DNA of 64,000 nt from Paraphysomonas bandaiensis (GCA_965644295.1 CBFFRP010000435.1:186001-250000), one strand, 5' to 3'. Counted from the stretch's first letter, positions 48,505-53,392 are shown. Made by a program: numbers and translations. The notes: a model not told the origin generated them from the sequence alone.

Positions 48505-49545
48505 CTATGTTGGAATTACTTCTCCTCCATCACAGTAGTAATATTCCTCTACTAGACCGCTGTCTATAAACGACTGGTTTCTCATACTAAACAGCTCTGC
48601 GCAACACGGCTGAGTATCTAGGGATGACCAAGTCGGCGTGACTATACTACTTGGCGGCCAAGTGGTCTCGTATCTATACGCCAAAATGAAAACGGAGGGC
48701 ACATACAGAGTGCATGCCAAAACGCATATCAGATACTTCCATATGCGTATTTTTTTAGCAGAAAATATGACGAAGCCTAAAAGTAAACCTGATAAAAATC
48801 CCCCTACATGTGCGGCATATCCCACACTAGGATTGAACCAAAAAACAAAGGCCAAGACATCTGATGCCAGCTGAATTATAAGAGTGAAAGCAAGAAACCC
48901 TCCCAGCACTGGATGGAGTGTGTCAACATTTAGAATAAGTTCTGAAAAGCAAGCCCCATACATTGCATACACACCGTGAGAGCATCCAATCAATGCCCGA
49001 TATGGCCAAACAGAGGCATGACACAATGCACCACCAAGAACACCCAACTGATAAACTATTAACGTTCTCCATAAACCTTGGCACCCTTCCAGAAGAACTC
49101 CAAACATGAATGCCATGAATTGGTTGGAGCATACATGAAGGTATCCGGCATGCACAAACTGATGACTCCATAAACGCAAGTACTGATCCCTATTATCTGA
49201 ACAGTATGGCCATCTACTTACTGTATCGAACATTAAATTACGATTAGGAGGAGATATTGGTTGATATCTGGAGTACTCGACATTGTTGACACCGATGAGA
49301 TAGTAAATGCCATATATATACAAACTCAGTTGAACAATTATCATTCCCACAGTGTATATCGGATAATGCGCAAATCGTGCATTTGACTGTGGTGGATCCG
49401 TGTTGATGACGTCTTCTGCTGATTCACCAGTGGAGGCTCCACTGCTCTCCATGTCTTGTACTTCGAAGTGATCACTGTCATCTGTAATATCTTCATATTG
49501 AGAAGTCGTTTTTGACGACGAAATACCACTCAGAAACATTAACAT
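48505..49545 (-). CDS. rhomboid-family intramembrane serine protease, intronless
   Basis: LRLWSHQFVHAGYLHVCSN, catalytic Ser in IGCSHG and catalytic His in AAHVGGFLSG. Confidence 0.88.
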   Translation of the reverse strand: MLMFLSGISSSKTTSQYEDITDDSDHFEVQDMESSGASTGESAEDVINTDPPQSNARFAHYPIYTVGMIIVQLSLYIYGIYYLIGVNNVEYSRYQPISPPNRNLMFDTVSRWPYCSDNRDQYLRLWSHQFVHAGYLHVCSNQFMAFMFGVLLEGCQGLWRTLIVYQLGVLGGALCHASVWPYRALIGCSHGVYAMYGACFSELILNVDTLHPVLGGFLAFTLIIQLASDVLAFVFWFNPSVGYAAHVGGFLSGLLLGFVIFSAKKIRIWKYLICVLACTLYVPSVFILAYRYETTWPPSSIVTPTWSSLDTQPCCAELFSMRNQSFIDSGLVEEYYYCDGGEVIPT

Positions 49546-49948: not shown

Positions 49949-50232
49949 ATACATACATACATACATACATACATACATACATACATACATACATACATAC
50001 ATACATACATACATACATACATACATACATACATACATACATACATACATACATACATACATACATACATACATACATACATACATACATACATACATAC
50101 ATACATACATACATACATACATACATACATACATACATACATACATACATACATACATACATACATACATACATACATACATACATACATACATACATAC
50201 ATACATACATACATACATACATACATACATAC
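49949..50232. repeat. perfect (ATAC)n microsatellite, about 71 units
   Basis: Uninterrupted ATAC run of 284 bp, read directly. Confidence 0.98.
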
Positions 50233-50366
50233 TGTACATGTACATGCAAGCACCCATCTACTATGTCATTGCACTGTGTTTCATTGTATATATATCCATT
50301 CAATAGAGTAATTACATCACTACCCTCTCCATACATCATTGACAATCTCATCAGAGTATATCCACA

Positions 50367-52765
50367 ATGACTTCAAACACCAATTCCTCTGACCAGGATG
50401 AAGTTCGCCGTAAGTCTCTGCGTCCCTCTCCAGATAGTGATGTGGTCACTAGTGTGATATCAAGCAGATGGGGTCTCTCTCTAATTAAATATAAACAACT
50501 AGAAAGTTATGATGATTGTAATTACTTCATTGAAGCTTCATCACTCTCAGGTGAACCCTCATGTTACTTGGTGAAGTTCTATAATGGAGTGGAGAGTGAG
50601 CGGGAAGAGATGCTGAGTGCAATGGGAGAGATGAGTGATGTATTGAGTAGTGGATGCAAACGACAGGGAACAGACACATGCAGTGATATTGATATTCCTC
50701 ACCCAATCCTTTCTTTGTCCTCAAAAAATATTGAAATGATTGATGATTGTCCGATGGCTGCGGGGGGTGTTGGGAAGGTTGCGGTCAGAGTGTTTACATG
50801 GGTTGCGGGAGTCACTCTGAATGCATACGGAAGCACTGATTCGTTACTAGCAGATGTTGGAAGAGCGCTGGGACAAGCCACAAGAGCTCTTACTGGCTAT
50901 GATAATGCTGCTTTTCACCGCTACCACGCGTGGGATATGAAGCAATTCGATCATGCTGCACAATTTTTTGAATGCATTGATGACAATACTGTGCGACATC
51001 TGGTGCAGAAAGTTCACAGATGCTTTCTGGAAGAGATTATACCAGACAGCGCGGCGTTTCCTGAATCAGTACTATTAGGTACTTGAATATATATACATAT
51101 TCTGCTCATGTAACCAAAATTGTATGTAGGAGACGTTAACGATGCCAACGTCATTATTCGTGACGATCCGACTTCCTCACTACCACGGGTTGCTGGATTA
51201 ATAGACTTTGGCGATTCTGTGTATAGTTGGACTGTGAATGACATTGCGATAGCCATGGCATATGCACTCTGTACTAGTCACTGTAGAGAAAGTTCCAATC
51301 CGGTTTCCGCGTTGATACTGCTATTGGCAAAGTACTGTGAGCATCGAGGATCTAGTCTGTTAGACATTGAAATAAAGCATTTGCAGGTACATATTTACTC
51401 TTTCGTGCCTACCATGTATTGGTGTGTAGAAATGTTACTTTTCATATGTTGGTGTCAGATCGATTCTGATTGACTACTAATATCATGTACAACATCTAGA
51501 TGTTAATCGGAGTTCGTTTGGCCGCATCCATATCAATGGGTGCTTATTCTATTCAAAAGGACCCCGAAAATGAATATTTGAAGCTTCATGCTCAGCCGGC
51601 GAGAGAAGCTCTAAAGATTCTGATGAGCTTTGACACTGATAAGATAACGAGTGTGTTTTCCCTTGCATGTAAAAGCGTTCAGACTACTGGAATCAGCTGT
51701 GCCACTTCAGTATTAAGTGAATTAGTTGCTGCCAAACCAATAACCTATTTCCAAACTTGCGAGGACAGCACACCTGCTACTAAGAAACCTCGACTTGATG
51801 AGCCCGTGTCGTCTGATAAACCAGTTCTAACATTCGTTACGGGAAACGCAAAAAAACTAGAAGAAGTAATGCAAATTTTGGGTTGCGATGACTCATCTCC
51901 CGATGCATTTCCGTACCGAATAGTCTCCCGTAAGCTTGATTTGCCAGAACTCCAAGGGTCGCCGGAAGAAGTCAGCAAGGAAAAATGCCGTTTGGCGGCT
52001 GAGCAGATTAAAGGGCCCGTTATAGTTGAAGACACAAGTTTGTGCTTTAATGCACTGGGAGGGCTCCCAGGGGTTTATATTAAGGTATTTTTATTTTGAT
52101 ACTGTAATGCCTGGGTGTGGTGCATTGGATTGATAACTGTCTTATACATCACTGTATACTGTAATGGTTAAGTTTTTCTTGTTTTCGTATGCGATAACAT
52201 CTACAGTATGTACACTACTTACACGAATATCTGTGTTGTCACTGTGCAGTGGTTTTTGGAGAAGACAGGACATGAGGGTTTAAATAACCTTTTGATGGGA
52301 TACGAAGACAAAACTGCATATGCCCAGTGCATTTTCTCGTTCTCTTATGGCCCAGGAAAGACTACTGACGAGCCATTGTTGTTTGTGGGTCGATGTCATG
52401 GTCAAATTGTACCTGCCAGAGGCCCTAACGCTTTTGGGTGAGTAATGAGCAGGTTGTTGTGGTAAATCCCAATCTATTTTTTGATCTACCAGTGTATATT
52501 CACGAAAGTTGGGTGTATCAGTGTCCGTGTATTTTTTTGTACACTGTTATCGTGGGATTGTAATTTTGTAGTGTTTTATCTGTGAGTACTACTTTGCTAA
52601 CTACACTTCTTCAGTTGGGATCCTATATTTCAGCCCGATGGATATAGTGAGACCTACGCCGAAATGGCATCGACAGTGAAGAACACTATCTCTCATCGCT
52701 ACAGGTCGTTGTGTGCTCTCAAAGATTTCTTCATTTCTGGAAAAGCGCAGAATACAAGTTGTTAG
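50367..52765 (+). CDS. hydroxylysine-kinase/APH-like phosphotransferase fused to inosine triphosphate pyrophosphatase (Ham1/ITPA), 630 aa
   Basis: Exons 50367-51078, 51130-51386, 51500-52084, 52250-52437 and 52615-52765 total 1893 nt in frame. Kinase motifs [34 protein letters not shown]. ITPase motifs [50 protein letters not shown]. Confidence 0.9.
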
Positions 52766-53392
52766 TTAGAGCGGTGAGTGTTAATCAGATTTTAGTTAAG
52801 CATTAATCGAATAGTTTCCTTTATGAAGAAGAGATAATTAATTCTGAAAATCTAAAATAGCGTGACTAGGTAATTCAACCAATTTGACTAGGTTGAATAA
52901 TATTTCCCATTTACTATTTTAAATTGTTACTTAGTATGATACTTCTTAATAATATTAATAGTTATTAGTCTACCACGTTCTGTCCAGTGGATATGTGTTT
53001 GCTTGACATAGTGGCCCGACAAGAGACTAAGAAGAACTATATCAGCAGAAAACATTGTCTTCAAGTGACATACTGAATATACGAGATACGAGAATATAAT
53101 CCATAATCCATATATCCATATTCTAATAGTTTGTTCGTCGTTCTTAATTCTTAAAACATGAAACTATGTTAAATTATAAACACGAAAATGTTCTTATGTA
53201 ATGAGCTATGTCTATTCCGAGTAAATCTCATATTTCGGTACATATACTTAGCAGTACTGCAATTCCAGAAGGTAGAGACAAGGATCCAGATTATATACTT
53301 ATTACACATAAGATATTATGAAACAAAAAACAACTATAAGACTTCACCAAATACAAACTACTGTAACGGAATATACAGCTGCAGTTCTATAA

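Follow-up and report, generated by a model that had tools for sequence, protein, structure and literature searches.

The question raised by this locus is what a kinase-like domain of the APH type does in one polypeptide with an inosine triphosphate pyrophosphatase (ITPase), the enzyme that universally protects the pool of purine nucleotides. The gene was found in a 64,000-nucleotide stretch of Paraphysomonas bandaiensis DNA (the window), at positions 50367-52765 of the plus strand, from an ATG at 50367 to a stop codon at 52763-52765, in five exons whose sum is 1890 coding bases, or 630 codons. An earlier note, made from the sequence of the window, had described here a hydroxylysine-kinase (HYKK)/APH-like kinase fused to an ITPase, and every element of that description was found in its place, with spliced RNA contigs covering both halves.

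The first exon (50367..51078) is preceded by a 5' untranslated region (50316..50366), in which RNA-derived contigs start at 50316, 50323 and 50337, and it encodes a conserved N-terminal RRKxxxP motif, the kinase N-lobe, with a SYDDCN loop and a Lys within a ten-residue stretch, and the beginning of the C-lobe. Its 3' end supplies the Leu of the catalytic loop and the first base of the following Gly codon, so that the loop L-G-D-V-N-D-A-N (51075..51149), with Leu at the usual His of the family, is split by intron 1 (51079..51129, 51 nt), across which the spliced contigs are joined at 51075/51127 and which is retained in a DNA run. Exon 2 (51130..51386) completes the loop with (G)DVNDAN, carries IDFGD (51201-51215), which binds Mg, and is separated by intron 2 (51387..51499, 113 nt) from exon 3 (51500-52084), a single open frame that contains the kinase end, the linker and the ITPase start. 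The first part of this exon (51500..51772) encodes the C-terminal helices of the kinase, with a stretch of 38 residues, and the beginning of the linker; the basic patch PATKKPRLD follows at 51773..51799, and the last part (51827..52084) encodes the N-terminal half of the ITPase. The 21 residues of the kinase helices and the 12 residues of the ITPase N-terminus singled out by the earlier note do lie in this exon and in the same frame, and since exon 3 alone joins the two domains, the fusion is independent of splice prediction. Intron 3 (52085..52249, 165 nt), exon 4 (52250..52437, the middle of the ITPase), intron 4 (52438..52614, 177 nt) and the coding part of exon 5 (52615..52765, the ITPase C-terminal part from GWDPIFQP to SHRYRS, with the stop codon) complete the gene, and the 3' untranslated region reaches 52831, RNA contigs ending at 52801, 52812 and 52831 (52766..52831 in all). 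Truncated gene calls of close relatives stop just beyond the same YIK at which intron 3 begins here, as would be expected if the intron position is common to those relatives.

All four introns have GT..AG borders and were precisely spliced out in RNA-derived contigs from three studies (public run contigs over window positions 50300-53100). A poly(A) marine metatranscriptome yielded one spliced contig of 1778 nt (50529..52812), and a second study one of 1974 nt (50323..52801), which extends from 44 nt 5' of the ATG to past the stop codon; the run of the latter is flagged 'RNA? (probably DNA)', yet its contig is spliced. Three overlapping spliced contigs over the gene came from the third study, while the contig of a DNA run keeps all four introns. 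One spliced mRNA therefore spans the kinase, the linker and the ITPase, and the gene is real and expressed. The reading LGDVNDAN needs a correct splice, because intron 1 cuts the loop, and this splice is confirmed by the RNA contigs. The contigs are assemblies from which transcript starts are not visible, and an internal start of transcription or translation is therefore conceivable. By codon reading, five of the seven strain differences in the coding sequence are synonymous (50504, 51047, 51311, 51802 and 51841), and the two nonsynonymous ones (51291 and 52757) are both Ser-to-Cys replacements in variable regions.

The identity of the C-terminal half is given by the Pfam profile Ham1p_like (PF01725), which, in a search of the gene model exon by exon rather than as a joined 630-residue protein, scored 68.9, 26.7 and 42.0 bits with exons 3, 4 and 5 (cut-off 22.5), these exons covering, in this order, profile positions 1-83, 92-147 and 149-186. 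Profile position 1 falls at residue 110 of exon 3, the domain portion of that exon being its residues 110-195. Aligned with human ITPA (2car_A), the ITPase exons correspond to chain residues 12-193, with one insertion of six residues and one of two, and every ITPA motif checked in the residue alignments with 2car_A and 4f95_A is kept, i.e., TGNxxK, DLPE, K, ED, FGWD and K..SHR. The conserved stretches include 20 residues running up to WD as well as KN.ISHR, and the 12-residue N-terminal segment, the next Lys, VEDT and the F-G-W-D that is split by intron 4 are all present, in agreement with the earlier description of the ITPase motifs as intact. They are to be compared with the catalytic and substrate-binding residues of the human enzyme, which we take to be T14/N16/K19, E44, K56, E71/D72, F149/W151 and K172/H177/R178. 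The full Ham1 domain and the phosphate, Mg and base-recognition motifs are thus common to the window protein and to the stand-alone human ITPA and yeast Ham1 (PF01725; PDB 2CAR, 2J4E), whereas in the window protein this domain occupies the last third of the 630 residues, following the kinase and the basic linker, and has the six-residue insertion after its first helix. A six-frame Pfam search of the 62.5-Mb assembly (669 contigs) recovered Ham1 at one locus only, in the same three pieces of the fusion gene, which is therefore the only ITPase of the genome in this assembly; such a check had been proposed beforehand.

The N-terminal half is more divergent. Pfam APH (PF01636) matched exon 2 alone with 23.2 bits, exactly at the cut-off, and exons 1-2 with 30.9 bits in the six-frame genome search, while full-length relatives reach 42-69 bits. 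The NCBIfam model PRK06148, a bacterial kinase fused to a class-III aminotransferase, is colinear with the kinase exons over its positions 14-345: positions 14-205 match exon 1 (E 5.6e-15), 209-270 exon 2 (E 9.4e-11) and 285-345 the first 62 residues of exon 3 (E 4.7e-5), against E 0.046 at best for the homoserine kinase model. A Triparma relative (P0152) behaves similarly, with 180.5 bits for PRK06148 versus 51.7 bits for homoserine kinase, and the kinase part of this relative, rather than of the window protein, has chordate hydroxylysine kinase as its nearest named ESM Atlas clusters (score 0.99). The designation as a HYKK/APH-like kinase was well chosen, and, judged by these profiles, the window kinase is of the APH fold and of the hydroxylysine-kinase/PRK06148 type, nearer to these than to other APH subfamilies. 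It has in common with HYKK/AGPHD1 (EC 2.7.1.81) and its bacterial relatives the fold, SYDDxN, the Lys, D-x-N-D-x-N and IDFGD, but differs in being fused to an ITPase, without a phospholyase partner, and in the Leu at the catalytic-loop His, the likeness itself being judged from profiles, clusters and motifs. Among solved structures, a profile of kinase parts of the fusion found amicoumacin kinase (5e-9), homoserine kinase II, aminopropanol kinase and APH(2'')-Id. The APH-fold small-molecule kinases 2PPQ (homoserine kinase II), 6SUI (amicoumacin kinase AmiN), 4WH1 (N-acetylhexosamine 1-kinase), 6EF6 (aminopropanol kinase) and APH(2'')-Id are the best profile or structural matches for the kinase domain, at an identity of just 11-16%, which speaks for the fold and the type of chemistry but does not single out a substrate. 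The substrate is probably a small metabolite bearing a hydroxyl, such as an amino-alcohol, a hydroxy-amino-acid or a sugar-type compound. To our knowledge, no substrate has been assigned to HYKK-like kinases other than those of animals, and the fusion, which here holds the sole ITPase and occurs in the main ochrophyte groups (diatoms, brown algae, bolidophytes, a xanthophyte and this chrysophyte-like genome), gives a concrete and testable clue to the role of the kinase.

A role as the canonical hydroxylysine kinase of this genome was considered and found less likely, given a separate gene with the APH and Aminotran_3 domains. A PRK06148 search of the assembly detected, on contig C290 (genome G000; L008:1501-4713, minus strand), an intron-less open reading frame of 1071 residues, with APH at residues 26-254 and Aminotran_3 at 656-1069, which matches PRK06148 positions 8-346 and 400-1009. 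The kinase part of this protein has bacterial 'hydroxylysine kinase' as its nearest ESM Atlas clusters and shows only ~21-45% identity to the window kinase in short local matches, so that the two are old paralogues. Because of this second PRK06148-like paralogue the assignment of the window kinase as a hydroxylysine kinase is ambiguous, and its substrate need not be hydroxylysine. The more typical partnership of HYKK-like kinases with class-III aminotransferases, pointed out in the earlier note, is thus found in this very genome, and, in comparison with the PRK06148/PRK06149 kinase-aminotransferase fusions, the window kinase matches the N-terminal 350 model positions colinearly but has an ITPase as its C-terminal partner instead of an aminotransferase.

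Whether the kinase half is likely to be catalytically competent can be judged from its relatives. Of the APH HGDxxxxN motif set, the Asp, the Asn, IDFGD and the Lys are present in the window, and the His is replaced by Leu. In 49 relatives the His position is occupied by His in 23, Gln in 21 and Met in five, and the next position by G, S, A or N; D-x-N-D-x-N is present in all 49, and a motif search found IDFGD or a close variant in 46 and SYDDxN likewise in 46 of them. The beta-3 Lys of (L/V)K..NGVES is kept in the window and is invariant in an alignment of seven fusion proteins. The departure from HGDxNxxN pointed out in the earlier note is genuine, its splice being confirmed by RNA, and a residue other than His recurs at this site among the relatives. 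At several positions that do not vary among these seven fusion proteins, which come from diatoms, bolidophytes and others, the window has a different residue (LRG to LAK, KHLR to KHLQ, and two lost Trp). The closest relatives (P0005, P0025, P0093, P0007 and P0001, at 37-63% identity) have, however, M or L at the His position, as the window does, and have in common with it a strongly conserved, clade-specific block of 13 residues; such changes suggest a lineage that has diverged under constraint rather than one in decay, and the mostly synonymous strain differences also point to constraint. The Lys and D-x-N-D-x-N being kept in every relative and IDFGD or a close variant in nearly all, the kinase of the fusion is probably active as a phosphotransferase, with a possible weakening or alteration of its chemistry in the window lineage, as the Leu and the lost invariant residues would suggest.

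Between the two domains lies a linker of ~50 residues, in which PATKKPRLD, with its basic KKPR, stands ~10 residues before the ITPase. The resemblance of this stretch to a nuclear-localisation signal had already been remarked, and a K/R cluster recurs at the same place in most relatives (KGKKRKK, PVKKIK, PLKRHK, LLKKAR, EKRQK, KKRK, KRKR), which makes a putative nuclear-localisation signal a reasonable inference. The structural model available is that of a relative, P0006 (AlphaFold, mean pLDDT 73.6, pTM 0.59), and it contains two confidently folded domains joined by a linker (residues ~400-449) with pLDDT below 50. In Foldseek comparisons, the C-terminal domain of P0006 resembles human ITPA with TM 0.85-0.89 (~0.88 for 2J4E), and the N-terminal domain resembles homoserine kinase II (0.76), N-acetylhexosamine kinase, amicoumacin kinase, YihE and aminopropanol kinase.

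The fusion is widespread among ochrophytes. HMMER with exon 3 against 1.84 billion cluster representatives returned 1795 matches, many of them over the whole query, i.e., the kinase helices, the linker and the ITPase, and of ten long representatives scanned with Pfam, seven were confirmed to have APH plus Ham1p_like; Triparma strigata, T. verrucosa, Eucampia antarctica and MMETSP transcripts are named among these clusters. The search for PF01636 plus PF01725 architectures that had been recommended, made with a profile built from seven full-length proteins, gave ~45 full-length APH+Ham1 proteins from diatoms (Thalassiosira spp., Detonula, Seminavis, Leptocylindrus, Fragilaria, Epithemia, Mayamaea), Bolidophyceae (Triparma, Bolidomonas), Xanthophyceae (Tribonema minus), Phaeophyceae (Ectocarpus, Pylaiella, Ascophyllum, Discosporangium) and Chrysoparadoxa, and in hundreds of metagenomic fragments the kinase helices and the ITPase are joined in one open reading frame. 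The kinase is thus present in relatives, with its key residues, and is not the degenerate and lineage-restricted half that had been envisaged as a counter-case. The named full-length matches are all ochrophyte, except for the EukProt entries of Bolivina argentea and Alexandrium tamarense, the former (P0110 cluster) having, in addition, 91-96-kb contigs in the NCBI assembly GCA_024449705.1; these two entries may be either contaminants or real non-ochrophyte carriers. We propose that the fusion arose once, long ago, close to the base of Ochrophyta. A supposed family of tandem ITPases, suggested by 'PF01725-only' matches of ~350-400 residues at ~550 bits, was resolved by BLASTP into truncated calls of the fusion, with the kinase C-lobe, the linker and the ITPase.

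The view that ITPase is normally a stand-alone enzyme needs qualifying, since fusions of other kinds were found as well. Among the exon-3 matches, PfkB+Ham1 occurs in eight clusters, one of them from Fragilaria crotonensis, and HIT+Ham1 in one; the two PfkB parts scanned with NCBIfam are ribokinase-like (TIGR02152, 242 and 188 bits). The ribokinase-like fusions, such as KAI2493697.1 of F. crotonensis, have the same order of kinase, linker and ITPase and occur also in diatoms, but their kinase fold (PfkB/ribokinase, the one with TIGR02152 at 242 bits) is unrelated to that of the window. Fragilaria crotonensis has both the APH-ITPase and the PfkB-ITPase fusions; the P. bandaiensis genome, with its single Ham1 locus, has no PfkB-ITPase gene. 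On the metagenomic contig L007 an APH-ITPase gene is followed 2 kb downstream by a free ITPase, 70% identical, so that a free ITPase is tolerated in some lineages. Taken together, the ribokinase, HIT and APH fusions suggest that in protists ITPase is frequently part of a larger protein of nucleotide metabolism.

On balance we hold it probable, with due reserve, that one nuclear gene here encodes a bifunctional protein, with both domains active as independent modules on a flexible tether, and that the fusion is older than the split of the sampled ochrophyte classes. The N-terminal ~400 residues would form a small-molecule kinase of the APH fold, followed by the flexible basic linker, and the C-terminal ~190 residues a canonical ITPase, predicted to hydrolyse ITP, dITP and XTP to the monophosphate and PPi and to be the only such enzyme of the cell. 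The fusion would have arisen before the sampled ochrophyte classes separated and have been retained since; the tether would provide co-expression and co-localisation of two active enzymes rather than a substrate channel, the modules probably acting independently because it is flexible, and its basic patch might bring the protein to the nucleus. The kinase would probably stand outside the canonical hydroxylysine route, which the kinase-aminotransferase fusion of the genome would serve. The long-kept fusion and the repeated joining of ITPase to ribokinase-like and HIT enzymes hint, as an observation against independent modules, at a real metabolic link. A coupled two-step enzyme, with the kinase and the ITPase in one purine/nucleoside or metabolite-damage-control pathway, is nevertheless rather unlikely in our estimation, be it in the form of a kinase that uses GTP or ITP, with the attached ITPase keeping watch over its donor pool, or of a kinase whose substrate, of the ribose or nucleoside type, is linked to the IMP or XMP that the ITPase releases, the two forms being judged jointly. 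It would agree with the persistence of the fusion, with the genome's sole ITPase in it, across the sampled ochrophyte classes, with the fusion of ITPase also to ribokinase-like PfkB (at least eight clusters) and HIT, and with the occurrence, among the structural neighbours of the kinase, of sugar kinases (NahK) and of APH(2'') enzymes, which use GTP, but the linker, with its length, variable sequence and predicted disorder, is unlike what a channel would require, and the closest families of the kinase use the hydroxyls of amino-alcohols and amino acids, not nucleotides.

The other two alternatives concern the separate halves. It is doubtful, and in our opinion quite improbable, that the kinase half is a pseudokinase, which no longer transfers phosphate and serves the ITPase by binding a ligand, by regulation, by oligomerisation or by targeting: Leu replaces the HGD His in the window, as Q or M does in about half of the 49 relatives, S, A or N often stands in place of the Gly, several family-invariant residues are altered in the window's lineage and the APH score of exon 2 only equals the cut-off, but the beta-3 Lys, the catalytic Asp and the Asn five positions after it are kept in the window and in every tabulated relative, and the Asp of the IDFGD type in nearly all of them. 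Decay is unlikely, because a decaying domain would not keep exactly the residues that bear the chemistry. Very unlikely, finally, is the production of two proteins from the locus, with a free ITPase arising by cleavage of the linker by a protease, from a promoter within the gene or from an internal start such as Met42 of exon 3. The contigs, in which transcript starts are invisible, the exposed and disordered linker of the P0006 model and the co-occurrence of the two ITPase forms on L007 could be accommodated by such a scheme, which had been named beforehand as a counter-case, but there is no Met just upstream of the ITPase domain, the linker frame is open in ~45 full-length relatives and hundreds of metagenomic fragments, and the RNA contigs of three studies cross the kinase-ITPase junction.

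Apart from the preferred reading of independent modules, the fusion may be read as a Rosetta stone, according to which the ochrophyte HYKK-like kinase would work with ITPase in purine-nucleotide or ribose salvage, or in the quality control of nucleotides; we put this forward tentatively and regard it as unlikely. A damage product of the nucleoside or sugar type might be the substrate of the kinase, or GTP or ITP might be its donor, under the supervision of the ITPase. The main argument for such a metabolic link, an indirect one, is that the partners of ITPase tend to be enzymes of nucleotides and sugar phosphates. If true, it would mean a new function for the kinase family and a new layer of nucleotide-pool sanitation, extending over the phylum, in some of the main primary producers of the ocean.

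The architecture itself is already in public databases, where it is automatically annotated, while full-text literature searches (ITPase fusions, diatom ITPase/APH, HYKK/AGPHD1/AGXT2L2) found no paper describing the kinase-ITPase architecture. In one kelp paper 'AGPHD1' appears merely as a KEGG label. For Thalassiosira pseudonana, EukProt has a 660-residue model of the fusion, and the GenBank counterpart is a partial 'predicted protein' of 198 residues. In UniProt the fusion proteins bear the automatic name 'Inosine triphosphate pyrophosphatase', an annotation which, on proteins of 570-850 residues, hides two thirds of the protein.

The HMMER search with exon 3 of the kinase-ITPase gene also matched ITPase domains joined to other partners, among which the PfkB+ITPase proteins form a distinct fusion family (cluster representatives P0037, P0078, P0051, P0056, P0052, P0070, P0087 and P0073), with ribokinase-like PfkB parts in both of the two members scanned against NCBIfam. 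Fragilaria crotonensis encodes such a protein (KAI2493697.1) and an APH-ITPase fusion in the same species. The representative P0083 is a HIT+ITPase fusion.

The APH-ITPase architecture was found as an intron-less gene with the HGD motif kept on a 15.5-kb metagenome contig (L007:618-2504), where a free ITPase of 237 aa (L007:4354-5067) lies 2 kb downstream; since the latter is 70% identical to the ITPase domain of the neighbouring fusion, sequence comparison suggests a local duplication. Another intron-less APH-ITPase gene, encoding 635 aa, is located on a 96-kb contig of the NCBI assembly GCA_024449705.1 (L006:4001-5908), and its cluster also contains a EukProt entry labelled 'Bolivina argentea'; these sequences may represent a non-ochrophyte carrier or else a contaminant.

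The genome of P. bandaiensis contains a second HYKK-like APH kinase, fused to a class-III aminotransferase in an intron-less ORF of 1071 aa on the minus strand (G000:C290:40170-43376, corresponding to the locus L008:1501-4713), with the kinase at residues 26-254 and the aminotransferase at residues 656-1069. The ORF covers nearly the full length of the bacterial model PRK06148. Its GC content is about 0.50, higher than that of the flanks (about 0.38-0.43).

Upstream, the kinase-ITPase gene forms a divergent pair with a single-exon gene on the minus strand (window 48505-49545) for a rhomboid-family protein of 346 aa, assigned by Pfam PF01694 on the identical transcript record. One third of the intergenic region of about 820 bp is occupied by a perfect (ATAC)x71 microsatellite (window 49949-50232). 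Directly beyond the 3' UTR, two short stretches (window 52854-52911 and 53052-53086) reach a summed depth of >22,000 versus about 100 in a DNA run, and numerous contigs there terminate in differing loose sequences, which marks the border of a dispersed repeat present in many copies.
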